DNA of 64,000 nt from Monocercomonoides exilis PA203 (lineage: Eukaryota; Protista; Preaxostyla): positions 62,001 through 126,000 of the forward strand of contig LSRY02000057.1 in NCBI GenBank assembly GCA_001643675.2, given 5' to 3'. A program made the translations under genes and the position numbers. Positions 6,901 through 44,431 of this stretch are shown here, piece after piece (the first letter of the stretch is position 1; every line of letters starts with the position of its first letter). A model generated the notes under the pieces. The model did no database searches. It was given only the letters and a program-made list of their open reading frames with translations, and was not told the DNA's origin.

Positions 6901-9900
6901 AGCTGCCTTGTGATCGATGCCAAAAGTGCCATCTGTGTGAGCTTCCTCTGCACAGACACAAGTTGCAGGGGATGATACAACAGCAGAGTGTCATGTTGCG
7001 ACAGCTTCTGCACATCCATCAGCACATCTCCAGACAAGTCACTCTGTTCATCTGCGCCTGTCGGAACAAGCGCGGGATTCTGAGTAGCAGAACCCGAAGC
7101 AGATGCTCCGGCTGAGGCATTTGAAGCAGAGGCTGATGATGAAGAAGTAGAACTCCCAGGAAGTGCAATGTTCAAAAGATTGGAAATATTGTTCGATTCC
7201 GATCCTTCTCCAGCTGCTGTGTTGTCACCATCTCCGCTTCTCCCTCTCTCGCTGCCACTTTTGCTTCCAGTAATGTTCAGGATGTTGTCTGCATTACGAT
7301 ATGCATTTTGCGACAAGCCCAACTTGATTTTAATCGAGTGCTCAACAGGAAGAGCGTGCGATGTGAGCGAATATTCTCCGTTCTGAAGTGAAAGCTGTAC
7401 AGCACCTGAGCTGTCTGCTGAAGAGGATGATGCGCTGAGCATCGCTGTGACAGCAGCCGGCTGTCTCTTCTCCACCAAAGTGCGGAAGAGCGTGTCTCGT
7501 GGCTGCCTGTGGAATGAAAGAAGCTCCATTCTTCGCATTCTTCGGATGATATCCAACTTCCTCAGAGTTTGTGGTGACTGCTTTGGAAGAGCGAAATTGT
7601 ACACTCGCAATTTGGGCAGTTTTGAGGAAGGCAAATAAGAAGATGCAGAAGAAGTGAGAACAAGCGCAGCGGAATTTGAAGATTGCTGGCGTTGTTGCTG
7701 AGGAGATAATTGAGCCAAAGGAGAACTTGGATGCTGTGACAACAATGTCTGGTCCATTTGCACTGTTGCTCCCAGCTGAGCATCTTGTTCATTGTTCTCT
7801 TCTGCTGCATTGTCAACTGTGTTGAATGCAACCAGCGCTGATCCCTGCACTTCCATCGTGTCCCAACACAGCGCTTTAATTCGTAGTGTTCGAATTGAAC
7901 TCATCAGCTCCTCTTTCCTCACCTCAGCAGTCACTTCTCTTGCCTGCCTTTCGCTGTCCTTCTTCAGCTTTTCCCTTAGCTCTGTGTCAATCACAACCTC
8001 CAATCGATCCAACCTTTCTGCTTCAGGCGCGTTCTTGTTGCGAGCAATGAGATCTGAAAGTGCTTGTCTTATTCTCTTCATCTGCTCCTTCAGCTGCTCG
8101 TTGACTGACACATACTGCCGTATTTCATCTTCCTCCTGTTTGCGCTGCTTCGCTTCAAAGAACAGCGGCTCTTCATCGTCTGGTGTGAGGATCTCATCTG
8201 CATCTCCACTCGGCATCAGATGTGCTGTTCCCGCACGACGTGACATTGCTCCATCTTCCATTGGACTGTCTCTTTCGTCTGAGGCTTCTCTTCTTCTGTG
8301 CCTCGAAATTGGAGTCGACAGTTCGTCCATCCGTCCAGTGCTGTTCTTTCTGTCTCTTTCTTCTCCTTCTTCATCCATTTCTTCTCCAGCAAACCTTCTT
8401 TCTCTTCTTTCCCTTTCTCTTCTTTCTCTCAACTCATTCCTCATCTCTTCTCTCTGCTTTTGAATAAACTCGATTCTCCTTGGAACCTCCTTCATAATCG
8501 CAGACGCTGCCACTTCTGCTCTTGTAAAGTGCTCGTTCGGAGTGACTATTCCATTCAATGATGTTGTTTGTCCGCTTCCTCCAGCCGTTGTCTGCGCTCC
8601 AAAAGCGCCTCCTTGTTTGAATGTCTGTGTGAGGTGTGGCTGATGCCCCATGATTGGCACAAGCTCAGGAGAAGGAAGCACCGGCACCTCCCATCCGAAT
8701 GCACACCCATCGTGTCCAGTGGAGATGGCGTGGGTGGAAGTGGGAGAGAATCTGATGCAAGCACCTCCCCCGCGGAATGGATCGTGAGATCTGTGCAGAA
8801 ACAGAGGATGCACTTGAGGGATACCCATTCCTCCTCCTATTCCTGGTATGTCACCACCAGCAGCGAGTGAAGCCTGCTGCATCTGTGAGCCAAGCATCTG
8901 AACTGAATGAAGTGCCAAGCAGCCATCTCTGCAGACAGCTGCAAGCAGCTTTCCGTCTGGCGAAACAACTAGTGAGTCGACTGTTCCGTTCTTCTCCATC
9001 CCTCCACAGGCGCCCGAACACGCAAAGAACGAGGCTTCGTCTGTGGACTCGCTCTCCTCCATCTCCAGCGGCAGACAATACAGCCGGGCAATCCTGTCTC
9101 GAGTGAGTGCAAACAGCGAGTGCTCATTTAGAGACGAGAGATACACAGCCTGATGATTGAGCGAGGCTTTCTGAAGTGCTTGTGCTGCTGCTGCTGCTGA
9201 TGCGCCTGTCCCTGCTCTTCGCCCAGGTGCTGCCTGTGGAATGGTCGGTGGCACAGGAAGAGGCAGCGCAGCGAGTGAGTCTGCGGGATATTCGAGATGC
9301 ACAGCAGACTTTTTGATCAAAAATGATGGAATTTCGTTCTCTTCGCTTGTTGTGTCGAGTGGAGGTGGGGTGATTCGGAGTACATCTCCATTTGACAACC
9401 CGACCAGAGCTTCAGAGCGGGTGCCGTTTGTTGCCCATGAAAGAGAAAGTGCTGGGTGCTGCAGCGTCACATAGCCAAAGAGAGAGAAGTTGCGTGCTGG
9501 CCGACCGTCCAAAATGAAGAGACGGGAATCATCGCCGGTAACTCCGATGTATTGGCCATATGGATGGTATCTGAGACATACAACTGCAGATGTGAACAGT
9601 CGAACACGGTGAAGAAGACGCAGTCCTTTCTCTTCGTTTTTCAGAACTTTCTTTTCATTACTCGCAGGTTCTTGAGATTCTGCAGGAGTCAGCTTTGCCA
9701 GAGACTGTGAGTGTTGTGAAGAGAACGACTGGTTCCTCTGCATCTGCTGCTGAAGAGGCGTTCTTGAGCTTCCTGGCTGGTTGCCCATTGGTGTTCCTGG
9801 AGTTGCACTCCCTTCTTTCCCATCTTCCAGCGCACAGAAGTCTCTTGCATCGTATATCCTCACCGTTCCACAATCTGTCCCCACAACAAGAAGCCCAGCA

Positions 9901-12900
9901 CCACTACAGAACGACATTGCCTGTGCTGATACACCCAGCCTTATCATTGCAACCATCCTCACGCCATGGCATGCTGTGCGAGGTGCAGGCTGTTTTGTGG
10001 GTCTTTGATGGATGCGCCTTCTCTTTGCGTGCGGACCTTTCTTTCCTGACCCTTCTCCTCCTTGTGATCCTCTCCCTGTATTTCCCCTTCCTGCTCCATC
10101 TCCATCAGCTGCATCGACTGCTCCTCCGTCAATTCCAGGGCGAGAGCGCGTCGACCTTCCAGTCTGCAGCACGTTTGAAGGGTCATTCAAATCAGCTCCG
10201 TATTCGTCATTGTCTCCTTCTCCGCCAGCTCCGCCCATCTCATCTTCATACCCTCCCCCCATCCTGCTGGCACCATCGCCTTCGTCCCTCATTCCTTCAT
10301 TGTTCCCATTCGCACCACTTCCTGATTCTCTGTTGCCTCCTGCTCCTTCCTCGCCTTCACCTCCTCCGCTGTTCATCGAGTCTGACTGGATGATCTGCAC
10401 AATTGGTGAAGACAATTCATCCCCTTCTCTTCTGTCGCGTGTGGAGTCGAGTGTTGGGTCAGTGGTCAGATGGAACGGAACGCCAACTGCATCAAACCAG
10501 TCAAGATCCATCTGCGATGACATCAGAATCAATTCTGAAAGAGCTTCTTTATCTTCGCTTTCATTCGAATCAGATTCTGCAAATTCATCGTTATTTCGTT
10601 CATTTCCTTTGTTTGATGAGAAATCGTCTTCATTTCCCAGTGGCTGAGGAGGTGCAGAAGAAGGATCTTCATCAGAATATTCCTCATTTCGTGCAACTTG
10701 CCCGTTTTTGCGCCTAATGATGTTTGAAAGTACATTTCTTTGAGTTTCATTCAGTTCTGCCGCATCCAACTGCTCAGCAGTCGCAAAGCTCTTTTCCATC
10801 TCCTTCAGACGTTGTCGAAGCAGCCTTCGTGGTGCGAGCGTGTTTAACATTTCGCGTGTGCCTTCAACGAATGACACATCGTTGTCTGCATTGTGCTGCT
10901 CCCAAATGCGAAGTGTGGCATCTTCCCCACCGACTGTCGCAAACATCGTCGGTGACAGCCACTCAACAGCTGAAACAGCTCCGATGTGGCGGTCCATCAC
11001 ACGCACATACCTCAGCTGCATACGGTCGATTGCTCGAAGATGTTGCAAGAATTTGCCTTTGGATGAATTTCTTTCGTTATTATTGAGCAAATCATCTGAA
11101 TTTCTTGCTTTATTTCTCCTTTTGGAAATATCTTTCTGATTTCGCTCTCCACTTTCATCTTCATCAGCATCATCATTATCATCGAAGAACGAATATGACT
11201 TCAACAGGTCATCTGGGCCGACTGTTGTAACCTCCTCTCTTTCTCCATCATCCATTTCTAACTCATTCTCATCTTCTGCATTTTCTTCTCCTTTTTCATT
11301 CAGAGCACCTCCTCTTCCTCTTCCCCTGCGCATCGCCCTTCCCAGCTCCTCCCAAGAAACAAGACGGTATTTGTTTCTTCTGATGGCATTGTTTCCTCTT
11401 CCACTCTCATCTCCTCCAATCTGAGACGATGCTCTGGCCAATCTTTCTTCGCCTTTATAACCATCGACTCCATCTTCTCCGTTTCTGTTGAGTGTTGCAT
11501 CGTCGACTGTCCTCTCCTTCCATTCGCTGCTGTATCCGCTTTCTCTTCGCCCGTCCAGCTCCATTTCTGCCATCTGCTCTCTCATCAGCAGCCGCCAGAT
11601 GCGCCGCTCTTCGAGTTCTTCGATGTCTTCCAGCGCTGCAAGAAACGAGGCTCCAGACGCAGAATTCACAAGAAGCAGCTGCATTCGGGCATCAGTGTCG
11701 AGAGAGAGAATGGATGTTGCACAGAACGGGAGGTAAGAAAGAGAGTGATCCGAATCTGTTGAAGAAGAAGAAGAAGAGGACGATGAAGAAGATGATGAAT
11801 TGGGCATAAGTGTAAGAGAAGGCTGATGTGGTGAAAGAGCAGAAATTGAAGTGGCAGCACCGAAGGAAGTGTGGTTGCTGGATGATGCAGAAAAGGAAGG
11901 TGAAGAAGCAAACGATGAAGATGAGGCAGAAAATGATGGAAGACTCTCCAGACGAAACGAGTGACGCAAGTGCAGAAAAGGGCAACTGAGATACAGCAGC
12001 TGCCCGTCCAAACAGCCAGCAAATAAGCCGTGCTTGGTGAGTGCAAGTGAAGATATCGGAGAACCAGATGGGATTCGCGTCTCCTCAGTAAATGTTTCCT
12101 TTTCCAAAGGGCTTCCGGAAAGCTGTCTATCAGCATCATATCTTGTTTGTGCTTGATCTGCATCTAACGATGATTTTCCTCGAAAATGCAACTCTTCTGC
12201 ATCAAAACGAAATATCTGTCCCTTTGAGGTGCCAATCAGAATACCCTGGGACTGTGGAAGCCACACACAACATAGAGCATCACCCATTTCATCAGGAATG
12301 CGGTACAGCCCAGGTGTGAGGAGGCATGTGAGTTCGTGAGGTACCATCGACATCACAAACACATATCGATGGGATAACACACAAATTTCATATCTATTTT
12401 CAGGGTTGAAAATAACTGTGTGCCATTGAGGTGGATTAAGCGACATCTCCAGCATATCGACTCCGTTTTTTGAATCTTGTCCTTTTGATTGAGAAATTGC
12501 AGAAGGAAGCGTTAACCCTGAACGCTTTGTCGTTCCGAGCTGTCCTCTTCCTGTTGCTCCAAATGACTGCTTGTCTTTTCTTTGTACATATAAAGGATTT
12601 AAACAAATATCTTGAGGTTGTTTTTCTCTATTCAGATAATAGTTACAAAGATGAGGCTCTCCATCACGATTCCAATCCCATATCGTAAGCTTTGCCTCAG
12701 GCAGAGACGATAATGAAGCGAGAAAACGTCCATCGCGAGAAAATGCCAAAATTTCAAATGGAACGAGAGGATAGCCTTTAATAAATTTTGTTTAAAAATA
12801 ATTAATATTGATTATCACCAAAATAACAAACCAGGAAGAACTTGAATCAATTCCATTTCAGGAGATTTTAAGATGGAAATCGATGGAGTTGAATCTCTCG

Positions 12901-26667: not shown

Positions 26668-29600
26668 CTACAGATATGATGTGTCGCAGAAACTGCTACT
26701 CCCAACATCGCTTCCTCTGCCAACATCGCTCACATTTTCATCGTCGATTGCATCAGATGCTGTCACAACCATCATCTCTGCTGGAAAGTGCCCGAAGAAC
26801 TCTCGCTTCAGCTCCACGAGCGTGGGCCTGCTCTTCGCCTGCAGCATCACGCACGCTTTCGCCGTCTCACCAAAACTGCTTGTCTCAACCACCCCCATGT
26901 TCGGCCTCTCCCCATTCTTTATCTTCTCTCCAGCCGTCTCAGCCTCATACTCCCCAAACGGGATCTGCAATGTCAGGCACTCCCACAGCATCATCCCTAT
27001 CGAGAACACCACCGTCTTCTTCGTCGCATGTTTCTTTGTTCCATTCAACAGCTCTGGTGCCTTCCACCTCAAACACTCCTTTCTGTTGTCTTCATCATCC
27101 TCAAAGGCAGATGAGGGCAAAGAGTCGCTTTCATCATCACTTGCTGATGTCACGACTGTTGATGAAGAGATGGAGGACGAAGTGTCTGAGCCTGATGAAC
27201 AATCTGAGTTCATGGCAATGCAGATGACCATGTGCTCGGAGAAAAGAATAATGTGGGGACTCAAATTGACAAGGGATTGAAGTTTGTTTTCCATCTCATC
27301 AAATGAATGGAGCGCCCCATTCACCACCCAGAACAGGATCTGAGCAGCTGTCATCTCCCTCTCTTCAAGAGTGCCTATTGCCATCTCCTTTGTTTTATTC
27401 CTTCCATGCAGGAGCATGAACAGCGAATCCCTCAAGTCCACAATCAGCTTTTCATGAGGCGATGAACAGGCCATTGCATCCACCAAATTCGACATCGACG
27501 AGGTTGTCGGACACAAATCCTCCCCTCGAACAAATGTGGTTTCTGTGTCAGTGGATGAGATGGATGAAATTGATGGTGAAGGAGTTCGCTTTCTGGTCTC
27601 TTCCTCATCATCAACCTTCTCCAGCATCCAATCTGGAATCTTGTCTGAATCCTTTCCTAATATGAATTCTGTTGAGCCACTCTCGGAAAGAAGATGCTCC
27701 GATGACTCCGAGTGTCCCAAACTTTTCTCATACACCCTCTTCTTTATCCGATCCTCATTCTTCTTCTCAGCTTCTCTTTCAGCTCTCCTCCACTGTGCCT
27801 CAGGTGACATCTCCATCGTCACCATCTCAATCAGCTTCGGATCCTTTTTCACTGTGTCTTCCACAATCATTTCCAATTCTTCAGTCCTTCTCTTTTGTTT
27901 TCTCCATCGAACAGCCAATATTATTGAAACAATGAGAACAATCAAAAGAATAACAACAAGCACAATCACAATCAACAACCAATAAGATTTCCTTTCTTTT
28001 CCTCCTTCCACCACTTTTTCATTTTCTGTCTTTGATTCGGTTTTGTTCTTCAGTATCTGTGGAGAAGTGGAAGACGATTGTTTTCCAAATAGAATCATCA
28101 CTGATACCTCTGTTTCATCTGTAACCTTTGAAACATTTTCTGATGGGATTATTCCAATCACTTCAGTTTCCGATTCAAAGCCATCTTCTTCAAACTGATA
28201 TGTCTCAACCAACTCCACATCCCCTGTTTTATACACAAGTCTGAATGACAAGTCGCAAGGCACAAAAAATGATCCCTTGAATTTTATTCCAATGTTGCTT
28301 CCTTTTTCATTCACTGAAACATCTTCCAGTTTTGGAATGAAGAAAGGAGATGAACTTTCTGCTGCTATCCCTCCAAAGCTGCATCCATCATTCAAGATCC
28401 AAAGAGAAGAATTATCCTTCAATCCATCTCCCCCTTTCAAGCTGGAAATATTCAATAAAGTTGAATCCGAGCAAATAATGTTTCTTCTCATCGAAGGATA
28501 TTTTTCAATGAATGGATTATTGTTCAAAAACTCTCCTTTCTCAATTGTTATATTGCCAGCTAGCACCGATAATCCACCCGATGAAGCATTCGAAATTGTC
28601 ACATATTTCATCATCAATGAAGAATTGGCAGAATGAACAAGCGATCCATTCCATTTGCATATCTCTTCAAAATCCCTGTTTCTCTCGTTTTCACTTTCTT
28701 TTCCAAGCACTCCAACAAATCGACATAAATCCATCAAAGCATCAATCGCATTGCTCAATTCCATAATGCTTCCTTTGTCAGACATGGAACAGCAGTTTGA
28801 GCAAGAGCAATTAGAAAGAACGATTTGAGCAGAAGTTGAAGAAGCCGAAAGAACAGAAGTGCCTTCTGAGTCCCTCGAACAGTTGTTGAATGAGGAGCTT
28901 CCAATGGAAATTGTTCCTGAAGTTGAATCATTTATTGAAAAGATACAGCCATCAGACAGTTTCACTCCATCTGCATCAATTCCATTGAATACAACTTTTT
29001 TGCATCCATCGATCACAAACACATTTCCCATTGTTTCAAAATTATTCATTTTCACATTTGTTATTGATGTCTCATCTCCACAAAGCAGAAATGAAGGCTT
29101 CTTGAATGATAAGAACGAGATTGAGCAGTTGTCAACATGAAGAATCCCCTTTGCAATGCTCAGCAATGATGAATTAAGAAAAACAACAGGCTGATTGTTG
29201 CTTGACCCTCCATCAGAAGAGAAATCAACAAATGAAAGAGAAAGCTGTCCACTTGCTTCATGAATGACTGAACTTCCAAAATAAGAAAACGATTGATCAA
29301 AGTTGAATTTCAATCTCTCAATCCGAACATTCTCTGATGTTGTTATGATATTTCCCTCATTGATATTAATTGTTGAGTTCAAATGCACTGAAGCAGCTAA
29401 CTGAGATTGCAACGAGTGGAAAATCACATCCTTCGCTTCGCATTCCCCGTTCATGACTGTTTCCTCTGATATCAACAGTTGGGAATACGATGATGGAATA
29501 ATGTGTTGCACTCCCTGATTCAATGATTGGCAAGGCATGCTGAACTCTCCACATTGCTTGCTATCTCCGTGGTTGCCTGTTGCTGAAGAAACAAATATCG

Positions 29601-32600
29601 TTTCACTCTGATATTTCACAACCCTCAGCAGAAGATCCTCTTCCCCAACAAATGAGTCTGTTGTACATCCCCATATTGCAAGATCCTTCACAAATGGTGT
29701 TCTGAAATCCAAAAGGAATTGCTCATCAACAATTTGTGTTTCGATTGAATGGCATCTCACATACACGTCCCTTCCTCTCAACGCAGAGTTGTCTCTGAAT
29801 GTGATATTCGACAGCACAAAGTTCAGAGGCTGTTCAACCACCGAGGTGCATTCCAGAAACAGCCACCCACCTCTTCCTGTGCTCGAGCAGAAGCACTCAG
29901 AAATCGTGCAAAATGAGCAGTCAAAGCTTCCTCCCTCATTCAACACACAAAACATCCCTCCTCCCTTTCCACATTTCGATCCTCCACACTTCTTCATTGT
30001 TGTGTTTCGAATCACCAGTTTCAATTGCTCATCATCATTGTCATTTCGAATGATGGGAATATCATCTGTTGTGTTCTGGGTGACTTCTTCGAATATACTC
30101 CACTCGATAACAACATCTTGTTCAACTTCATTTCTCTCTCTTCTTGAACTCTTTGAAATGCTCAATTCGCTTGCTCCTTCCAGATCAATATTCTTCATTG
30201 TCAGATTTTGAATGTTCAAAATCGTTGTTGATAACACAGAAACAACATTTTTTGAAAAGCTTAGTGACTGAATTGTTACAAATTCCAATTGAACTGCGCC
30301 TCCGTCTGCCTTGATCAGACCAAAATTAATTATTTCTTTTCCACTTTCTTCATTTTTTGTGAATGAGCAGTCTTTCAGAGTCAACAATCCTTCACTTGAT
30401 CCAACATGCATTAAATAACTGACTCCACCTGTAAATGATGATGGAACAACAAAGTTTATCAGCTCGAAATCGGTAATTCCAGAAATCTTCATTGCTGCTT
30501 CCCCTTCTCCTTCAAGAGATGAGTGGCATTCCAAGGAGCACAATTTTTCTTCATCTGATTTTATTGAAATTCCGCCGAGATCAACACACTTCTGAAGAAT
30601 CCCCTTTCCAATAATGTTCATATTCTTTTCATTTCCCTCAGGCAATCGATCCAAAGAATAATCGATTGACAGACAAGGATAATCTGAGAATCCGCAAGCA
30701 CCCATATCTCTTCCTTTGTCTCCAATAAATATCTCTGAGCCAAATGCTCTCCAGAAATAGATCAGTGGAATAGCACTTGTTGTGTCGTCTCCATCAAACC
30801 CTCTCATTGAATCCAATGAAATATCTGCCAGATGTCCTGATACGAATGGAAGAGAAATGTTTGTGATGCTTTTTGTCAAGTTGGATGATTCGACAAACAG
30901 GTCATTTCCACATTTTGCAACATTTGGCTTGTCTGAACAAAAAACAGGAGATGAGATCACAAACGAAGAACAAACATCAATCAATTTCAGTGCCATTCCT
31001 CCCCCAAATCCAATCTTCCGTTCTTCAGCTGGTGCTGTGCATCCTGTGAATGTGTATGAAATAATGTTCAATTGAGTATTCCCTTTCATCTGCACATTGA
31101 GAGCCCCTCCTCTGCTTTCATCAGCCAAAACAGAACATCCATCAAAAACACATTCTTCAATAATTATTTCACCATTTGAATTTTCATTGTTGCTATTATC
31201 AATGCTGATACAGCCTCCATTTCCAGCTGCCCTTTCGATTTTCGTGAAATTGCTGTTCGTCATGTTCAACCACTGAGTGCTTATCAACTCGGTATTTGTG
31301 CTGCTTCCAGACAATGAAATCAATGGATTTCTCCTCAAATCAATCGATGAAGCTGAGAATTTGTCGATTATCAGGATCCCTGACTCAACAGACAAGAACA
31401 AAAATGTCAATTCTGATGATGGATTTTGAAGGGAAAGCGAACATTGAGACAAAGTCAGTTGTGAAGAAGACAAAATAAAAGTGGAGTGTGACGAGAGAGA
31501 AGAAGGAAGAGAAAAGATAAGCGCTGATAATTCTGTTTCAACACTTGCTGTAATCATCTCTGAATTGGTCATTGAACTTGTTTCAGAGACTGTCCAGCCA
31601 CTTTGATCATCATTTCCTTTGATTTCATGTTTCTGTTCTTCAAATGTCAATTCATCGCTCATCAAAATCATTCCATTCACAATAATTTTCTTTGTTCCTG
31701 TTTGCCTTGTGAGTGAATGTTTCATTGCCAAACAAGGGAACTGGACAATTCCACAGTGCGAATGATTGGATGCCTCAATATCGCTCACATATATTTCTTC
31801 TGGAGTGGGAAGGAGATAGATGCACAGAGGAATGGCCACACTCGTATTTCCATTGTCATATCCTCTCACTCTGTCGACAGAATCCAAAGAGGCTGTCACA
31901 CATGTAATATTTTGTGAGTTTGCAGTTTCTTCCAGATTTGGTGAAACGACAAAAATATCTCTTCCCCATTTGGCTGTATTTGTGCCAAAGGAAGAAGATA
32001 TCAGGAAATCTTGATTCTCATTCATCAATTGAAGAAGTATTCCTCCTCCGAGACCATTTACTATTGAACAATAGCATTCATCAAAAGATCCACCATTCAC
32101 TTTCACTTCATTATCATTCCCAACACATAGCTTCATTGATCCTCCATTTTCTGAACTTGTGCTTCCGCATCCTGAAAATGAACAAGAATTCAAATTAGCA
32201 TTGACCTTGTCGTTGGAAAATGAGATGACAGAAGCTCCACTCGTTGTTCTCTCAATTCCATTAAAGGTGCATTCGGATATTATCAATGAAATTTCATTTG
32301 TTGAAGAAAGCGAAAATAACGAAGTTGTGGAGATAGTCTTTGCCCAGTTCACACTATCCATCTGAAACATCCCATTCTGAACATTTATCAATTCTGTAGT
32401 AAATGCTGTTTCTGAAGATTGCCCACTTTCAGCAGATATGTTCAGTCTACTAATATGCATCTCTCCTGCTCCACTTATCTCAAACAGCCTTGAGGCACGA
32501 TTATTTGCATGTGCCGAGTTGTGCACAAGAATAAAGTCTCTGACAGTCAATGCGCCTGTTGAGACTGAAAAAAGAGTAAAACCTGATTCTTCTAACTCTG

Positions 32601-34410
32601 TCTGCACAGTTGTGCTCAAACCACTTTGGCCATATATTGTGTATGTGTTGGAACTGCAGTCCACGCTTTTGGTCTCTGTAATCGTTCCTGCGAGCATCTC
32701 GATATCCTTCACAAAACCTGGAATTAGTTGACTCAAACAATGGCTGATGGTGCTGCATGGATGACTTTCATTCAGTCCACATGCAAATGTATCTTTGGCA
32801 TTTGGTTGTGAATCAGTTGAAGAAACAAATCTCACATTTCCAAAATCGTTTCGAAGCCATTCGCTTCTATCAACAATGGAATATAAGTCTGTACAAACCC
32901 TATTTGATGTATTCCTTGTGGAGAAGCAGCTTGGGTCAATGTTGTTTGTCGATGATCTATGAAGAACAATATCATGTCCTCCTTTTACACAGGTGTTATT
33001 GTGGAAAAAACAGAAATAAAACAATGTCCCGTTGTTATCTGCATTTAGCAATATTCCAACAGCTCCTCCTCCATTCACGGAATGACAATTACGGAACAAA
33101 CAATTTGAAACGATAGCCTTTCCAAATGAACACCAATGTTGAATTGCACCTCCAACGGACGATGTTGAATGATTTACTTCGCAAGAGATAAAAATTGAAT
33201 TTATGACACATTTTTCCTGTCTTTGGGTTTTTATTTGATTGAGTTCAATTGCCCCTCCATCATTGCCAGATGAGCAATTTTGAAAGGAACAATCGTCTAC
33301 CATTGACTGCACAATAACATTTTCAAATTGAATTCCTCCACCTCCAAATTCTATATTTTTTGTAGCACATGAGCATTGTGCAAACGTGGAATGGAGAACA
33401 ATGCATTCTGCAATTTTCAATGCATATATTCCTCCTCCTCTTGTCGAGGAAGCGTTGCATCTTGTGAATGAAGAATTCTCAACTCTGAGAATTGCATTTT
33501 CATTGTCATGCACATAAAGGGCACCTCCTTGTGGGGATGTGCAATCAACCCATTCGCACAATGAAAATGATTGGCTGCTAGTTGTGTCCATTTTTTCTTT
33601 TCTTTGGAGATCATTCATCTCTCTTTCCCCGTAGCTTATTGATGTGTTTTTGCACACAAATTCTTGTGAAGAATAAGATCCACTCGAAATCCCTCCTTCA
33701 AAGGCATTCACGCACGAATAAATAAGGCAATTTTCCATTGAACTCAACAAGCATGAATGCTCCATTTGACAATCACAGTTCTTGAAGGGCTTCATAGAAA
33801 TGTTCCTGAAGGCACAGTTATTAATTTGTTCACTTTTGCTCTTTCCAGACAACAGAAAATAGTCTGAGGATGATACAGTCAGATCTGTCATGATCGAATT
33901 TCTCAAAACGACATAATTTGAATCATCAGATGAAAATATGAGACTGGAAGGGTTCAGATTCTTTTGGGGGATCAAACTCAAATTCACCATGCAGATTGAC
34001 CCACTTTGCAAATGAAAAGGAGTTGTTGATTTTTGGTGGGAAATGCAGGAATCAATTGTGATTGTTGATTTATCTGTAATTAGGATCAAAGGTGAAGACA
34101 AATGTTCAATTGCCAAATTCTTTACTCCAATTGTGGAATTGGAAAATACAAAAAATGAATAAACAACTGTCGATATTCCTGATTGCAATCTTTTCACTTC
34201 TGAGAATGTATTCTGATCAAATAAATAATAACTATTTGTCTTAGAGATAAATTGTGAATCATTAAAATTGCCTTGACCAAAATAAATGCAATTAATCAAA
34301 AAATATTAATGCCAAAGAATACCTTTGTTTTTCAATATTGCAGCACCAGAGACATTTTGCGCTTCAAGTTTCCTCCAAAGAATCAACCATGCAAAAAGGA
34401 ACAAATGCAT
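26668..34410 (-). CDS. Giant single-pass receptor-like protein: signal peptide, repeated Cys-rich beta-helix (Pmp/pectin-lyase-like) modules, TM, C-terminal TKL-like pseudokinase; intron ~34272-34322
   Basis: Short first exon MHLFLFAWLILWRKLEAQN joins the 2543-aa ORF in frame. GGA(I/L)/GGG and F..C/F..N repeats; four CG....PC motifs; TM YWLLIVIVLVVILLIVLIVSIILAV-RWRK; RWKAPE...VVFSIGMMLWECLTLQIPF...RP. Confidence 0.8.
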
Positions 34411-36826: not shown

Positions 36827-37323
36827 AAAATAACTTTTTTAATTATGAGTTAATTATTCCTTTTTTAATTCTTAAATTTGATCATAAAATTGGCTGTTCT
36901 TGTTGAAACAATCCTTTCTTTTGAGCTTTGACCAATAAACGTTGATTTATTTTTTCGAAGAAATAATTTTTTATCAGATGAACATTTCTTAATAAACAAT
37001 ATTCAGAAAGCCATAATGATAAACTTATCTCTTTGAGGAATATCATTTTGTTATATTGTGAAGTGACGTGAAACTTCAATTTGAATCAGCCATTTTTGAT
37101 AATTGGTGTGAATAATAAACACTTATTCTATTACATATTTTTATGTTCGATTCATTTTGATTATTTTTTTAAATGAAAGTTGCAAATTTTTGCATATATA
37201 TATATACAATTTCTTTTCTATTCTATTCAATTATTTTAATAAGATATTTATAAAACAAATACTAGGCAGTTAGATTTGAGTATCAAAATTGAATCATAAA
37301 ACATAAAATTACATCTCTTTCGC

Positions 37324-38342
37324 TCATTCTTCCCACATCATTTGTCCATCATCTTCATTTCTGTCGTTGCTAATGCATGAATACTTCGTTAACAAAGAGC
37401 TTACAAACATAGGAGATGCTGGCAAATCAGCACCATCAATTGTCTGGGGCTTAAAAGCCAAAAAGGAAGATGAACAAGAAATTGGACGAGATAAGAATAT
37501 TGGATCAAGTTGTTGTATGGCCAATGATGATATAAAATAATTAAATGCAGAAGAGTTAGTGTTGTTTTTAACTGCAAATTCATTTGAATTTGAAGAAGAT
37601 GCACCAACAGTTTCGTTTTTGCTTTTGAGATGTTGCTTTGCTGCTAAAATCCATTTCTTGCAAAATTCGGATTCACCTCCACAAAAATATTTGAATAAAT
37701 CCGTTGTATCTGATTTTTCGCTTACAGAAAGCTTCGATAAATAATTACTGAGAGGACTAAGATCAGGAACTGAATCAGCAATATTCAACAATGATTGAAT
37801 TTCTGAAATTCGTCTTGAAGGATTAAAAAACGTTGGCTCTCGCATTTCGAATTGTTTAAAGCTCGTTACTAATTGTGATTACATTTCAGAAAAAACCATT
37901 TATTTTTGTTTATTACGATAATTTCAAACAAACCATGTTCATGAGATAACATTCCAAAAGATCTGTCAAATTGAGCTTCCTCAAAAAATGGTGTTTCGTC
38001 TTCGATATTTGAAAGGCGAAAAGAAGCAGCATCTACAAAACGAGCAATATCATTCATTTCTTCATTTATTGAAGAAAATGCTTCATCCTGTAATCAAATC
38101 AAGTGATGTTACAAATAAAGAGCATGATTAAAAAATGTGTCATTATTTTACAATGAAATGCGAAATACAATTGCACGAGTTAATTTTTGGGCTGCAATTA
38201 GAATTCCAGTAAGCTCAGTTATTAAAATTGAACTCTGAACTTTTTCCGGTTTATCTCGAGATCTATCAATAGTCTGATCAATGAACTCATATCCTGGTCC
38301 AGATGGACCTGGATGAAGTTGGGCTGTATGAAAAGATGACAT
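37324..38342 (-). CDS. Compact, divergent SCAR/WAVE-like actin nucleation-promoting factor (~290 aa); introns ~38088-38168, ~37869-37933
   Basis: ELTGILIAAQKLTRAI|DEAFSSINEEMNDIARFVDAASFRLSNIEDETPFFE resembles SCAR homology domain helices. VPDLSPLSNY..FKYF..EFCKKW resembles PPPLNILTPY..KFYT..FFDLW. C-terminal FVSSLLTKYSCISNDRNEDDGQMMWEE resembles the C-A region with terminal Trp. Confidence 0.6.
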
Positions 38343-38646
38343 TCTTTCCACGCAAACTAAAAAATTTATTATACCCTGGATCAAAAGAAAAGATTATAAT
38401 TTATGTTTGAAACAACATCATATTCGAGCTCATGATTATTTTGCCTAAAATCCTGTTTTGCTCAACAGATAAAAAAACAAATATATTTCTGAATATCTCA
38501 AAAAATAAATAATAAATGAATCTTTTTCGAATTCTTATAAAAATAACATAAGAAACAAATAAATCAACCAAACTCTAGGTTGATTATGAAATTAGGAAAA
38601 AACTCAAATTAAAATATACAAAAAAAAAAAAGCAAAAACAATTAAT

Positions 38647-39096
38647 TTATGGGCGGTATGCAGCAGTAATGTTGTTGTACTTAATGAAATCACTAACGGA
38701 CATGGAAACAACTCCTTTCTTTGAGTTTGCAGCGTGAACAGCTTGTCCATTGTTTCCAACCAACCCAACATGCCCGGACCTGTACAAAATATCGCCTGCT
38801 TTTACACTGCTAAGGGAAACAGTTTTAATTCCACTACTTGGGTATCCAGATGTTGTTGAGGGAACTTTCTTTCCAATTTGTGAATATGCCTTGTAAACTA
38901 AGCCAGAGCAATCAAAGCAATTTGGTCCAAGACGGCAGCATTCTCCAGCACGTCCCGTACATTGAGCTTGTGAATACCCTTTTCCAACTTGGTTAAATGC
39001 GTACTTTACAACTTCATCAATTCCATTGGATTCGCGCAAAGGAGAAAATTCGTTTCCAAAAGTCGTGAAGAAAAATGAAATAACAAAAGCAAGCAT
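38647..39096 (-). CDS. Secreted NlpC/P60 family peptidoglycan endopeptidase, intronless
   Basis: Hydrophobic N-terminus; A..QVGKGY, GPNCFDCSGLV (catalytic Cys), AGDILY, GHVGL (His), VHAA (third His), KGV, final YRP. Confidence 0.92.
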   Translation of the reverse strand: MLAFVISFFFTTFGNEFSPLRESNGIDEVVKYAFNQVGKGYSQAQCTGRAGECCRLGPNCFDCSGLVYKAYSQIGKKVPSTTSGYPSSGIKTVSLSSVKAGDILYRSGHVGLVGNNGQAVHAANSKKGVVSMSVSDFIKYNNITAAYRP

Positions 39097-39948
39097 GTTT
39101 GCCTAACCCCTCAATAAATGATCTTTTCCTTTTATAAGATTATTTTTCCAATTTTCATAATTTTTCCGATGGCTAAGATCCTCTTTTGATGGGAAATATT
39201 CATGAAAATTTAACTTTTTTTGAATACCAATGTGGCAATTTTACCTTTTGAAGAAATAAAAAGGATTGATTGTATTTTTTGTTTTGCAACAAAAAAAATA
39301 TTATCTGCATGAAAATTTACCAAGATATATTCGCACTGTGTAGAATCAAGTGAAGAACAAAATGAAAAAATGAAACGAAGCTTGATCTAATTGAAATTTT
39401 TTCTAATTTTAGAGAATTAATTATTTATGAATAATTCAACATTTCATTTTCAATCAAAATATGATATTTTGAAAGTGATATAATTATATTTTTCAAAAAG
39501 AATTTCAAAAAAGTTATAAACATCATTTCACTTCTCGAAAATTGCAATAGTTTTTTCTTATGTAAAGAAAAACACTTTAACAGAAAATATTCTCTTTCTC
39601 TAAACTTTCAGATAAAAATTGGTAAAACAATTAGCATTCATTCCGCATTTCACCATTAAAATAAACATCAAATCATTTTTGATGATAAGTCACAAGCTAT
39701 TTCCAATGAAATAAAGTTAATAAAGCATTTGTTACAGAAAAATTTAACCGAATCATAAATTGTCCATTCTTTTTTTTCAAAACATTAAATAAAATGCCTT
39801 TTATGTCAATGTAAATAAACTGAAAAATCGCTCGATACAAGAAAAGACATGGATAAATAAATCCATTTTTTTTAAAAATGTTAAAACTAAAAAAATTGAA
39901 AGAAATCAACAGCAAGTGAAGGAAATGAGCATCAACAATGTCCCAGTT

Positions 39949-42547
39949 CTAAAATCTGACTTCGTAATTACCAGAGAGTGTGAGTGTTTTGAGCCCCTTG
40001 TACATCTTGTACGTGGTGTCAGGAGAAAGATCGAGCTTTGTGAGCTTCAGCGACGATGCTGTGAAGTTGGGTATTTTGAAGTGGAGGCAAGCGATCGGTC
40101 TCTCTTCGCAGATGGTGTCCTTGTCTTCGAAGTCCATCGTGCCCTGGATGGTTATCTCGCCTGTCAGTGGGAGACGGTTCACTACCCATCTGCCCAACTG
40201 TCATGCGGGAAAAAGAGGAAAATAAATATGTCATGTTTGAATTGATAAATACACATTTGAATATTTATAGTAATAAAAGAAGAAAGATTAAATAAAAAAG
40301 ATAAGAATATGGCAAATTCATACGTGTGTGGAAACATCATAAGTGAATCCTCCAACAGAACACGATGCTCCACAAGATTTGATGCAGCGTGGCATTTTGA
40401 AGTCGATGTAGCAGTCTTCCACAGGAAGAGAGCGAGTGTTGCGCGCAGCAACCTGTCAGATGCAGAATATGAGTGACAGAGATAGATAGAGAAAGAGAAA
40501 GAGAAAGAGAAAGAGAAAGAGAAAGAGAAAGAGAAAGAGAAAGAGAAAGAGAAAGAGAAAGAGAAAGAGAAAGAGAAAGAGAAAGAGAAAGAGAAAGAGA
40601 AAGAGAAAGAGAAAGAGAAAGAGAAAGAGAAAGAGAAAGAGAAAGAGAAAGAGAAAGAGAAAGAGAAAGAGAAAGAGAAAGAGAATAAGAAATTATTAAA
40701 TTGTTAAAGTATTTATTTAAGAGGAAGAAAAATAAAAGAAAGGACATTCAATAAAATCCAAAAAAAAAAAAAACAGTGATTAACACAATAAAATGAAAAT
40801 CTCTATACATTTATTTCTCTCTCATTTCATTTCTCTCCATTCAAAAAGCACATTTCATATACAAAATTGAACACAAACCCCCAAAAAGAACCGCGCAGAG
40901 CCTGTTTGGACAAGAAACTCAGGTCGAACAGAAATTGGCGGTGGAACAGCAGCTGATGTGGCTCTATTGAAAAACAAATAATCATAATAATTAATAACAT
41001 TCAAATTGAAGTACAAAATATAAATAAATATTATTGATTTTTTCAGTTGGATAAATAAAAATAAAATATCAACGAAGAAGTTATCAAAACAATAAATGTG
41101 AATAATCTCCCAATTTTCCTAACAAAGAAGCACATCTCAAACAAAAAGTGGCTCAAATGATGAAAATGCTTTTGCAAGCAGTTTGCCCAGCAATGTCGAA
41201 TGCAGACATCACAATGAGGTTTCATATCGTTTTCAAATAGCCTCAATTTATTTCCATTTCTTTGATATTCTTTCTTTCTCTCTCTCTTTCTCTTTCTTTC
41301 TCTTTCTTTACAAATTTCATTCTCCTCACATAAGCATCATACCCAGCTCTGTATCTCAGCAGCGTAAACATCCCGTCAGGCGGTACAAAGGAGACCACCT
41401 TCGACTGGTTCCAGCGGAAGTACCTGACACACGGGTGCAGCGACACATCGTCCATAATCGAAGGGTTTTCGAACTGCATCGTCAGATCAGGAACTCCGCT
41501 GAGCTTCGCTGTGCATTGGATCTCTCCGCTGATGTGACTGTTTTGTATAACACCCTCGCTGATTAATTATCGGCAAATTAAACATTAGTTGTAAGGGATT
41601 GTGCAGTGTTGTTATAGAAGAATATGCAACGCGTAAATGCAAATAATTCAAAAATATACAAAAGCATGAATAATACAAATAAACATTGTGAAATTCGAAA
41701 AAAAAAAGGAAATATTGGAAGTTTTAATCATGTTTTAAAGATCGCAAGAAAAGAAGCAAACGATCCAAATGATGCATTGAATGTTTCATTAATATCAATA
41801 AAGACTTCATTTTGAACATAAACAACTTTTGATTTTCTCCAATACATTGGTGAAGACATGGAATCTGGTAGTTTCGGATTAGACTGTTAAAACGCATTTA
41901 AAAGAATATATATTATAGAATAATTTGCATTTTTTTTCTTTGAAAAGCAAAAACAAACAATTACAGTTCCTGCTGAATAACCAGTAAATCCAGGAGTCTC
42001 GAGCATTTCCTTTATCAAATTAGGTTCTGTAATATTTGGATATCCTCCATCAATTAACTCTTCCATTAACTGTTTAATGAAAAGTACAATATTAATAATT
42101 GTAAGGCTTTAAATGACAAACCATAAATAGATAGATAAAATTCTGTCTCACTTTTTGATCAACAGCTTTCTCTCCAAAGAAATCGCATAAAACACGATCG
42201 ACGTGTTCAAGAAACTTTGAGAATAAAAGTGCTGGGGCTTCAGTTTTTGTTGCAATCATATAAACCAAATTGTGTTGTTGATAATAAAATAAGAAGCAAT
42301 CATGTTGCTCCGAGTATATCATTGGCTTCATTGGAACTTTTTCGTCAGTTTTCGTAACTGTCAAAAAGAAATCATCACAAAGCGAGCGAGGGTAAGCTTC
42401 GCCGTATGATCTTTCAAATATCAAATCACTGGATCAAAATTCAGTATGAAAAAGAAATTAAAATGCACGAATTTTAACATGTATTGAAGATAAATTTTAT
42501 AAATGCTCCAACCCTTGCCCTGAGCAAATGTAAAAACTGTCAATCAT
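39949..42547 (-). CDS. AP3M: Adaptor protein complex mu subunit, most like AP-3 mu; multi-exon
   Basis: MIDSFYICSGQG|DLIFERSY...LCDDFF; MEELIDGGYPNITEPNLIKEML; MDDVSLHPCVRYFRWNQSKVVSFVPPDGMFTLLRYR; YKGLKTLTLSGNYEVRF. Confidence 0.85.
40489..40685. repeat. Perfect (GAGAAA)~32 microsatellite in an AP3M intron
   Basis: Read directly from the sequence. Confidence 0.97.
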
Positions 42548-42574: not shown

Positions 42575-44431
42575 ATGTCTTGTGATCTGTACCATCAATT
42601 TGAAATGATATCATTCACAAAAGTTTCAAAAGAGTATTCCATTGTTAAAAGAGGTCATTCGTTTATCTCTTTTTTATTTAATTTATAGTGTGCCACCTGC
42701 AATGCTTGGGAAGCCTCAATATCGCATGGCTTTACCAGATCTCCCTGCACAACCAATTTTTTTAGAAACCGAAACAAATGTCGATGATTTTGTGACATAT
42801 CAATTTACTTCAATGGAAAAGGCTGCAAAATATCCTTTATTAACTGAGCCAGATCTTGGAGTTCCAATTGACCTTGTATCACACATAGCAAAAGTCAGTA
42901 TGAAATCATTCATATTTTCATTAAATGTGTATATACTGGAATTTTTTAAATTTGTAAAGCTATTTTCCATGGTAATGACGCTAATCAAAAAGATCAAAAT
43001 ACTCTTTCTCCTGAAGATGAAGATCTTCTTCCAGATGATGATGATATAATGGCTATTCAACCTGCAGCTGCCAGGAACAGAAGTTTGGGTCATGTCCCTT
43101 GGATGAGAAAGGGACTTCTTATTTCAGATGAGCCAATGGATGGCGTCAAGCGACATTCCGTTTCGTTAAAACCGTATGATAATCTTTTTACTTTTGATGA
43201 ATTATGAAACATTTTCTATTTTTTTTTCAGTCATCAAGCAAACGAACCACCTCCGTTTGAAGAAATGTATTCTTCAGTCGATAAAACATTTAAGCCATTA
43301 AATTTTGATACTCGTTCTTTCCGTCATCCGTCAAAGAAGCATTTAAGAGTGAAAGATTGCTCACCTCTTCTTCCAGCAGCAGATCAATGGGTCAATTTGT
43401 TTGTCTCCTTGTTTCTTATTTTTGCTGAATTTTGACTTATTTTCCTCAATTATATATGAACGAATTTGTTATATTTTGTGCCATCTGATAATACTTTGAA
43501 ACATTCAGATATTGGCATGTCTCGTTTCCAAACGATCCAAAGCTTCCTACAGATGTTCGACTGGAGCAATCCATTCTCCAAAAACAAGAAGATACAACAA
43601 GCATATATTTACCAACGCCAGCTCACGAAATTGTTTGTTTTTTGTGCTAAATAATGAGAAATGTGAAATGAAAATTTCGTTTAAAAATTTTAACACGCAA
43701 TTTTCTTTGCAGGAAGAATACAACGACATTTCAGATCCAACTTCAGGAGAGCACGAAACTGAAAAGGGCGATTTGTCGCTTCGCACAGAGCTGATGGAGG
43801 AAGATGACTACGAAAGTGCCTCCGTGTATGCAAATGATAGAGAATATTTCCGTGAATATGAATGGAAAAATGATTACTCTTGTGAAGCTGAAACGTATGG
43901 CGCATTTAATTGATTTAATTCACTCTTTATTGACTTTTTTATTCATATATTCAAATTCTTTTGATAAGCTTGACGCCTTCTCTTTATACGATGTCAGACT
44001 CCTTTGCTCTGATGCGAGATACACATGGAAGAACACTCTACGTGGAAATTGCAGGAAAATTAAACGTGTGGATGAAAGATAAATCAAATGAGAAAGAGCC
44101 AGATTCTGAAGAAAGAGAATCCAAAGAGAAAAAGAAACAAGAGATGCCTCTTTATGTTTATTTCCGTCTTCCTGATGAATCTGAAATGAACGCTCACGAG
44201 GAAAGAAGTAATATCATTGATGATCCAAACATTGTGCTCGATGAAATTCAGCTTGTAGAAGCAGACCAACTTTTGCAACAAAATCGAACCACAGCATGGA
44301 AGCCTCAATCATTTATTCATAGGCTATCAAAATTTGTTGATCCATCTGAACTTACAAAAGAAGATGCATATGAGGAGCAATCAGATATGCAGGACATAAA
44401 CTCAGCTTCAACAAAAGCAGAACCTTATTAA
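42575..44431 (+). CDS. PAF1: RNA polymerase II-associated factor 1 (Paf1); multi-exon, start at 42575 or 42605
   Basis: YRMALPDLP..P.F...YQFTSMEK...LLTEPDLGVPIDL, LSPEDEDLL, VPWMRK, HPSKK.L.V....LLP...QW match Paf1 motifs; GT-AG introns restore the frame. Confidence 0.85.

Follow-up and report, generated by a model that had tools for sequence, protein, structure and literature searches.

Within a 64,000-nucleotide stretch of the genome of the oxymonad Monocercomonoides exilis PA203 (contig LSRY02000057.1, positions 62,001 to 126,000 of the forward strand; hereafter the window, in whose coordinates all positions without a contig name are given), we identified a complete intronless gene for an enzyme of the NlpC/P60 family (MEROPS C40). 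It is a real, single-copy, transcribed nuclear gene of the oxymonad. We estimate a probability of about 0.75 for the joint reading that it encodes an expressed, secreted NlpC/P60 enzyme with the catalytic residues Cys63-His109-His121, which acts on bacterial walls and belongs to a distinct protist clade of bacterial descent. The gene, its product, and its transcript have the following features:

38647..39096, minus strand: complete intronless NlpC/P60 coding sequence (CDS), ATG to TAA, 149 codons plus stop
39055..39096, minus strand: probable signal peptide, residues 1–14, hydrophobic sequence MLAFVISFFFTTFG with small residues at positions -3/-1, from hydropathy and the structural model
38650..39024, minus strand: single NlpC/P60 catalytic domain with a papain-like alpha+beta fold, residues 25–149, from AlphaFold2 (AF2) and Foldseek
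38917..38961, minus strand: clade-specific Cys-rich insert, residues 46–60 (C46, C53, C54, C60), from alignments
38908..38910, minus strand: TGC codon of catalytic Cys63, in FDCSGL, aligned to MepS and other solved enzymes and invariant in the family
38770..38772, minus strand: CAT codon of catalytic His109, in GHVG, aligned to HVG of solved enzymes and invariant in the family
38734..38736, minus strand: CAC codon of the third triad residue His121, in VHAA, aligned to VHA of E. coli MepS/Spr
38400..38646, minus strand: 3' untranslated region of about 247 nt, to a poly(A) site near 38400, from RNA contig ends
38436-38441, minus strand: AAAUAA hexamer, 36–41 nt upstream of the poly(A) site

The Pfam model NLPC_P60 (PF00877) matches the 149-aa protein with 44.1 bits (gathering cut-off 23; E 2.2e-11). 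In NCBIfam, only NlpC/P60-type models (RipC, RipB, MepS, and others) were matched, with scores below their full-length cut-offs, which a lone domain would be expected to miss, together with two weak reductase models, which are taken as chance matches. Alignment to solved NlpC/P60 enzymes, E. coli MepS/Spr among them, located the triad, whose codons were read from the sequence. The cysteine and the first histidine are invariant in the 57-row family alignment; the third residue is His in oxymonads, and other family members have N, S, E, or Q at this position. An AF2 model (57-row alignment) has a mean predicted local distance difference test score (pLDDT) of 93.5 and contains a helix at residues 63–72 that begins at Cys63. 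All 50 PDB matches listed by Foldseek are NlpC/P60 domains (probability 1.00; template modelling (TM) score by target up to 0.80), and the best among those listed is the CI_01448 domain of Clostridium innocuum (8er5; 34% identity, TM 0.66/0.77). The protein hence combines a profile score above threshold, a cysteine at a helix start, a histidine and a third polar residue, and a papain-like fold, as is characteristic of the C40 family.

At the N-terminus, Kyte-Doolittle means over nine residues are 2.0–2.7 for segments starting at residues 1–5 and fall to about 0 by residue 10. This part is poorly ordered in the AF2 model, with pLDDT of 66–77 over residues 1–20 and the first ~24 residues disordered, and a similar hydrophobic N-terminal segment is present in nearly all family members. 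We infer that residues 1–14 are a signal peptide and that the protein is secreted. The mature form is predicted to have a mass of about 14 kDa, an isoelectric point of about 9.3, and four cysteines in addition to the catalytic one.

Transcription of the gene was assessed using assembled contigs from four metatranscriptome RNA-seq runs of a single study, aligned to positions 36900–40250. The contigs over the NlpC/P60 gene, spanning 38400–39379 at most, follow the genome colinearly, without any joint or sequence difference; hence the gene is intronless. Contigs of two runs share their 3' end at base 38400, and one contig continues past it with 24 non-templated T (plus strand), where the genome reads aagattataa. 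This T run beyond the genome match is therefore the poly(A) tail of a minus-strand mRNA. The published poly(A) signals of M. exilis are AAAUAA and AAUAAA, usually located 20–30 nt upstream of the site (PMC8767320). The k-mer depth of the contigs is 470–966 for the NlpC/P60 gene vs. 27 and 32–54 for its two neighbors in the same runs, which suggests that the gene is highly expressed, contig depth being a weak measure of expression. The sequence-only reading of the window had described an intronless 149-aa open reading frame (ORF) with an intact Cys-His-His triad and had proposed polyadenylated expression as a check; the exact ORF, the Pfam match, the aligned triad, and a colinear, unspliced mRNA with a non-templated 24-nt poly(A) are all in agreement with it.

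The M. exilis PA203 assembly, obtained by Oxford Nanopore sequencing, comprises 101 contigs and ~82.3 Mbp (PMC8767320). Searching all 82,301,135 bases of these 101 contigs with the protein and with a six-frame Pfam profile search returned a single NlpC/P60 locus (44.4 bits), and neither search found further NlpC/P60 paralogs in the 82.3-Mb genome.

The closest relatives of the protein are found in another oxymonad. A word search identified four Blattamonas nauphoetae paralogs (53–61% identity, on contigs of 86–684 kb) and a few metagenomic proteins. An exhaustive phmmer search yielded 3,930 relatives, among which only three representatives (two of Blattamonas, the third on an ENA contig of 600 bp) had E<=1e-30. 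The next tier consists of about 40 representatives at 60–104 bits that share the motif GK-x-YSQ...R-x-G-P, a C-terminal YRP, and eukaryote-style signal peptides. Three members of this tier received names from a profile search: one is from Naegleria gruberi and two are from Willaertia magna. The profile scores drop from at least 192 bits inside the family to at most 132 bits outside it, where the first bacteria are Nocardioides, Streptomyces, and Luteococcus. The window protein carries the family signature, with GKGYSQ...CCRLGPNCFDCSG before the catalytic Cys and AYRP at its end. A literature search found no published description of this oxymonad/heterolobosean NlpC/P60 family, which is in effect a new clade within a known kind.

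The Blattamonas paralogs (BLNAU_20846, BLNAU_5565, BLNAU_14136, and BLNAU_2289, all annotated as hypothetical) resemble the M. exilis protein in length, style of the signal peptide, four-Cys insert, and triad. They differ from it in being present in four copies rather than one and in having an extra Cys pair near the termini; in addition, one of them, BLNAU_2289 (P0005), bears a C-terminal SPOR domain at residues 167–236 (56 bits). SPOR is a bacterial module that binds septal peptidoglycan and is unusual in a eukaryotic protein; no SPOR match was found in the M. exilis genome. Several environmental members of the clade are fused to SH3_3. The heterolobosean proteins (the N. gruberi "predicted protein" and W. 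magna ABK040_012163 and ABK040_002371) share the clade, the YSQ...R-x-G-P motif, the C-terminal YRP, and the signal peptides. They are 39–58% identical to the M. exilis protein, have a two-Cys pattern (GKC...PxC) or none in place of the four-Cys insert, often have N or S as the third triad residue, and in many cases carry long N-terminal extensions, giving a total length of 170–440 aa.

Outside oxymonads, eukaryotic context was verified for Naegleria, two Willaertia, and the P0009/P0161, P0014, P0017, and P0030 contigs. One unnamed member is located on a contig of 103 kb, together with genes for a homeobox protein, SPT16, Arf, ribosomal S15, and TANGO6. The SPT16 product is 58% identical to that of Acrasis kona vs. 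~35% for fungi and animals, and the contig probably comes from an Acrasis-like heterolobosean. A second contig with the same cluster carries a split Arf gene. The contigs of other unnamed members contain BEACH and SPX-EXS genes, split Ras genes and kinases, or a prefoldin neighbor. About 30 family rows sit on short contigs. The neighbor of P0163 has a borderline cyclin match and that of P0016 is a PreP protease, and their contexts are short or bare, as are those of P0011, P0019, and P0025. The P0024 contig (L012:1-11051; 21.5% GC) encodes a dCTP deaminase, an RNase III with a double-stranded RNA-binding domain, an M43 peptidase, and large ORFs without family matches. Either a giant virus or an organism with very AT-rich DNA could be its source; a virus would be a conceivable vector for transfer between eukaryotes. 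In the group nearest the family in a quick tree, P0036 is encoded in a compact co-directional array with Peptidase_S11 and MMPL genes.

The Cys-rich insert lies directly before the catalytic Cys, in place of the usual G-x-P-Y-x-W-G-G, the stretch beginning here with GKGYSQ. A regular-expression search of 270 NlpC/P60 proteins found the four-Cys pattern (C-x6-CC-R-L-G-P-x-C) only in oxymonads and eight other family rows; environmental members with four cysteines here are P0006, P0007, P0010, P0018, P0019, and P0030. Neither this insert nor the Naegleria-type two-Cys variant was found in any of the 219 proteins not assigned to the family, an apparent two-Cys exception, P0081, having joined the family in a later tree. 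Likewise, no relative with the CCRLGP pattern was found among 185,579 bacterial and archaeal species genomes; a scan of these genomes with the single protein returned no relative, and an alignment-based scan returned only a Nocardioides metagenome-assembled genome (MAG; L013). The four-Cys insert is probably disulfide-stapled.

The distinctness of the clade is recovered in trees. In a quick tree of 149 domains, the oxymonads fall within a 45-row clade with a Shimodaira–Hasegawa-like approximate likelihood ratio test (SH-aLRT) support of 94. Two more careful unrooted trees of 83 and 88 rows, the latter with added bacterial proteins bearing the YSQ motif, were built with IQ-TREE under LG+C20+F+G4 with posterior mean site frequencies (PMSF) from ~130 columns; supports are given as ultrafast bootstrap (UFBoot)/SH-aLRT. 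The most distant bacterial representatives were left out, as were the duplicates P0161 and P0094 (P0158 in the first tree only) and the long or fragmentary P0136, P0077, and P0113. The family (44–45 rows) is split from all bacterial rows with supports of 99/95 in the 83-row tree and 99/94 in the 88-row tree, and the oxymonads are monophyletic (100/96 to 100/99). Their position inside the family varies: in the 83-row tree they are sister to the rest of the family (94/69), and in the 88-row tree they fall, with weak support (84/72), into an 11-row group that consists of exactly the sequences with the four-Cys insert.

Hence, the oxymonad genes belong to a distinct clade, which is eukaryote-encoded wherever the context could be checked and is ultimately of bacterial ancestry. 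The sequence-only reading had proposed a lateral transfer of a bacterial-type gene. Its bacterial ancestry stands, while a lone transfer from a bacterium to an oxymonad does not, given the eukaryote-encoded kin and the 99/95 and 99/94 supports. The same reading had listed grouping with vertically inherited eukaryotic homologs as an outcome that would speak against it. The grouping is real, but the patchy spread over two distant lineages does not demonstrate simple vertical descent.

The motif YSQ...RLGP also occurs in bacterial proteins, i.e., in the Nocardioides MAG (L013), P0108, and P0121, with a YTQ variant in P0036, P0064, and P0158. Their architectures include M23+EEP+NlpC/P60 (P0108, P0121, L013) and Phage_lysozyme2+NlpC/P60 (P0158, P0028). 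The Actinomycetota and mobile-element hydrolases L013, P0108, and P0121 share QVGKGYSQ...LRLGP...DCSGLVY with the clade, but are only 39% identical, multidomain, 950–1270 aa long, and devoid of the Cys insert. Such large multidomain hydrolases of mobile-element or Actinomycetota type are possibly kin of the donor, judging from the shared motif. Since the trees are unrooted and their bacterial side is a polytomy, they single out no donor lineage. A sister-group position of the YSQ-bearing bacteria was considered and not recovered, as they join the Nocardioides clade, which lies with the bacteria across the 99/94 branch.

These bacterial proteins bear on an alternative scenario, in which oxymonads and Heterolobosea separately took the gene from the same or related unsampled bacterial or phage donors and the clade is an artifact of sampling. 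The YSQ-bearing hydrolases, being of mobile-element type (M23+NlpC/P60, Phage_lysozyme2+NlpC/P60), would be plausible repeat donors, the two lineages with the patchily distributed gene are very distant from each other, and many family rows lack a verified context. Nevertheless, we regard repeated capture as unlikely: the branch between the family and bacteria retains its 99/95 and 99/94 supports even with the YSQ-bearing bacteria included, the four- and two-Cys patterns occur in 0/219 non-family proteins and 0/185,579 species genomes, and the profile scores drop abruptly at the family boundary. A fuller scenario, which we offer tentatively and consider less probable than not, is that of a previously undescribed eukaryote-resident family of secreted bacteriolytic NlpC/P60 enzymes with one origin from a bacterial mobile-element hydrolase and a subsequent eukaryote-to-eukaryote spread among unrelated bacterivorous protists (Heterolobosea and oxymonads), possibly virus-mediated, in which a eukaryote-specific, disulfide-stapled insert next to the active site would tune stability or substrate range in phagolysosomes.

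The NlpC/P60 enzymes of Trichomonas vaginalis (Tv) are the only ones characterized so far in protists. They were compared here by structural identity, profile rank, one viewed alignment, and published trees, rather than within our trees. Both sets of enzymes occur in metamonad hosts, are small proteins of bacterial ancestry with a signal peptide and a Cys-His-His triad, have the same fold (TM 0.60–0.66), and are expressed when bacteria are present. The differences include copy number (nine vs. one), the experimentally demonstrated activity of the Trichomonas enzymes vs. the inferred activity of the M. exilis one, and the clan A architecture of two bacterial SH3b domains plus NlpC/P60, which is absent from the window protein, a single-domain protein with no SH3 domain by Pfam.

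An ancestral metamonad acquisition common to oxymonads and Trichomonas clans A and/or B would fit two metamonad lineages that live among bacteria and that both encode small secreted NlpC/P60 proteins with a Cys-His-His triad (PMC10461829). However, the TvNlpC structures are only 21–27% identical to the model, below several bacterial enzymes (34% for C. innocuum, 28–30% for Corynebacterium glutamicum), and are mid-table against the family profile (79–84 bits vs. 114 for 8er5). No Trichomonas protein was among the named best hits of the word and profile searches, and 6biq, the clan A structure and the sole Trichomonas sequence whose alignment was viewed, retains the canonical G-x-K-Y-V-W and has neither YSQ nor the Cys insert. 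In published trees, the neighbors of the Tv clans are a C. difficile phage and Drancourtella in one case, Streptosporangium and C. bifermentans in the other, which allies the clans with other bacteria or a phage, and approximately unbiased (AU) tests reject Tv acquisition events shared with other eukaryotes (bioRxiv 10.1101/320382). We thus consider a shared metamonad origin very improbable, and the oxymonad gene appears to be independent of the Trichomonas genes, the comparison being indirect. The suggestion of the sequence-only reading that the acquisition might be ancestral in metamonads is accordingly not upheld: the gene is common to two oxymonad genera, whereas the Trichomonas enzymes are distant and lack the family motifs, as seen in 6biq. 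Published NlpC/P60 trees sampled neither oxymonads nor Heterolobosea (PMC10461829; bioRxiv 10.1101/320382). In a 2025 paper on the Trichomonas "toolkit", the homologues reported for M. exilis are those of GH19 and Lcn972 and do not include NlpC/P60.

As for function, a stem-peptide endopeptidase is suggested by the fold, the intact triad, and structural neighbors that are all active on peptidoglycan; we assign this activity by analogy with characterized enzymes. Bacterial P60-type DL-endopeptidases (C. innocuum CI_01448, E. coli MepS/Spr, M. tuberculosis RipA/RipC, B. subtilis LytE/CwlO) share the fold, the triad, and the Pfam family with the M. exilis protein; they differ in having G-x-P-Y-x-W-G-G instead of GKGYSQ plus the insert and in being usually lipoproteins or multidomain proteins. 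Bacterial enzymes of this type are used for remodeling of the producer's own wall or in phage or conjugation entry. In the proposed mechanism, the M. exilis enzyme would enter the secretory pathway and reach phagolysosomes and/or the medium, where Cys63, activated by His109, would attack the stem peptide of peptidoglycan at an amide bond, most likely that between gamma-D-Glu and the diamino acid, as in P60-type DL-endopeptidases.

Glycan strands would be cut by other enzymes. The M. exilis genome contains four GH25 muramidase loci, each an open frame of 250–335 aa with no internal stops:

C37:943770-944384: GH25 muramidase locus
C14:1417446-1418060: GH25 muramidase locus
C14:969137-969733: GH25 muramidase locus
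C2:1323333-1323935: GH25 muramidase locus

These four enzymes are likely the glycan-cutting partners of the NlpC/P60 enzyme, which would complement them in digesting or killing bacterial prey. Bacteria serve M. exilis as prey and are required in its cultures, and the organism has been reported to encode peptidoglycan-degrading enzymes (PMC12308965). The antibacterial role suggested by the sequence-only reading remains the best one in view of the relatives with SPOR and SH3_3 domains, the basic Cys-rich mature protein, bacterivory, and the four GH25 loci.

The superfamily also holds acyltransferases, amidases, and inactive binders such as RipD, and one may hence consider that the enzyme does not act on peptidoglycan, having another gamma-glutamyl or lipid substrate or serving as a non-catalytic wall binder. 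An insert adjacent to the active site could alter specificity, and the third triad residue is replaced in several family members. Yet the triad is intact in 5/5 oxymonad proteins, every close structural neighbor is a peptidoglycan endopeptidase, in relatives the domain is fused to SPOR or SH3_3, both of which bind peptidoglycan, and the organism, itself wall-less, feeds on bacteria (PMC12308965), so that a different substrate is improbable. In terms of history, the clade would derive from bacterial NlpC/P60 enzymes, possibly from mobile-element or Actinomycetota-type hydrolases sharing YSQ, and the gene would have reached oxymonads before the Monocercomonoides/Blattamonas split, independently of Trichomonas NlpC/P60.

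The genomic neighborhood of the gene is eukaryotic, with both flanking genes spliced and encoded on the same strand as the NlpC/P60 gene:

37231..38412, minus strand: downstream neighbor, spliced, with a joined ORF of 290 aa; RNA joints in all four runs
37869-37933 and ~38087-38168, minus strand: introns of the downstream neighbor, CT..AC on the plus strand, i.e., GT..AG on the minus strand
39748..40357, minus strand: upstream neighbor, mu subunit of an adaptor protein (AP) complex, with the last exon ending at 40197 and, beyond an intron, the next exon
40198-40323, minus strand: intron of the AP mu-subunit gene, GT..AG; RNA contigs jump from ~40197 to 40324
42642-43046, plus strand: exon for the N-terminal part of Paf1 (an RNA polymerase II-associated factor; 41.7 bits), 3.5 kb from the NlpC/P60 gene

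The last exon of the downstream neighbor matched no Pfam family. The 5' end of this gene (38412) overlaps the poly(A) site of the NlpC/P60 gene (38400) by about 12 nt, and genes of the same strand are thus tightly packed at 38400–38412. The upstream neighbor was identified by Pfam Adap_comp_sub on 39949–40197 (43.5 bits vs. a cut-off of 31.6). Its RNA contigs extend to 40328–40357, and one mismatch and a loose end fit a canonical minus-strand intron. The AP mu-subunit region also contains, at 40337–40747, a perfect (GA)n/(CT)n microsatellite longer than 200 bp, just upstream, on the minus strand, of the ~40324–40357 exon. Several further unassigned ORFs at 43.5–44.4 kb, on the same strand as the Paf1 exon, are probably later exons.

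An intronless gene of a bacterial-type protein family, found in an organism kept in xenic culture, might be suspected of being a bacterial contaminant or a product of a chimeric assembly. This explanation is rejected. The mRNA is polyadenylated; the transcripts of the spliced neighbors come within 60 nt on one side and ~370 nt on the other; the GC content at third codon positions (GC3) of the NlpC/P60 CDS is host-like (0.31, with 0.21–0.44 in neighboring host genes); the contig carrying the gene exceeds 500 kb; another oxymonad genome, that of Blattamonas, contains four orthologous paralogs; and none of the bacterial genomes searched has a close relative. The spliced neighbors, the poly(A), and the host-like GC3 therefore effectively exclude contamination or chimerism, and the RNA-supported GT..AG introns on both sides substantiate the earlier remark that the gene, being flanked by two intron-containing genes, was unlikely to be a contaminant.

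Several considerations weigh against the reading of this gene as a secreted, wall-active enzyme of a distinct protist clade. All RNA data are assembled contigs of a single study, only one contig shows the poly(A) tail, and the AAAUAA hexamer at 36–41 nt is spaced somewhat farther from the poly(A) site than the usual 20–30 nt. The N-terminus has no charged n-region, the signal peptide and the disulfides are putative, and the substrate and the bond cleaved are assigned by analogy only. Eukaryotic context was verified for about 8 of the ~40 non-oxymonad rows, the others being on short or ambiguous contigs, some of which could be bacterial or viral, and the context of the P0024 contig is odd. Finally, the trees rest on ~130 columns with a polytomy on the bacterial side and were sampled without Trichomonas, Acanthamoeba, fungal, and mite sequences.

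Elsewhere in the window, an uninterrupted ORF of 2543 aa (26668–34299, minus strand) shows a single kinase signal, which covers the C-lobe alone, with positions 160–257 of the 258 in the Pfam PK_Tyr_Ser-Thr profile matched at residues 2402–2500; a weak match to transmembrane-protein families precedes the kinase part at residues ~2076–2195. Another long ORF, of 2804 aa (4335–12749, minus strand), is located in a GC-rich island (CDS GC 0.49, local values up to 0.53, window mean 0.36). The segment 1001–2000, with a GC skew of -0.88 and an AT skew of -0.92, indicates a long low-complexity or repeat tract.

Eukaryotic capture of bacterial cell-wall hydrolases is a textbook case of functional gene transfer. 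As the enzyme class is already well known, the gain from the present observations lies in its distribution and evolution and not in mechanism. The Trichomonas NlpC/P60 enzymes have been presented as the only functional peptidoglycan hydrolases described in protozoan parasites (Barnett et al., 2023), and the gene reported here adds a second, independent metamonad lineage with an NlpC/P60 gene, which in this case is demonstrably expressed. The oxymonad genes belong to a wider clade with free-living Heterolobosea, unsampled in published NlpC/P60 trees, and this clade provides a test case for eukaryote-to-eukaryote spread vs. repeated capture of antibacterial genes. For M. exilis itself, which still needs bacteria to grow, the protein is a candidate digestive or antibacterial enzyme.

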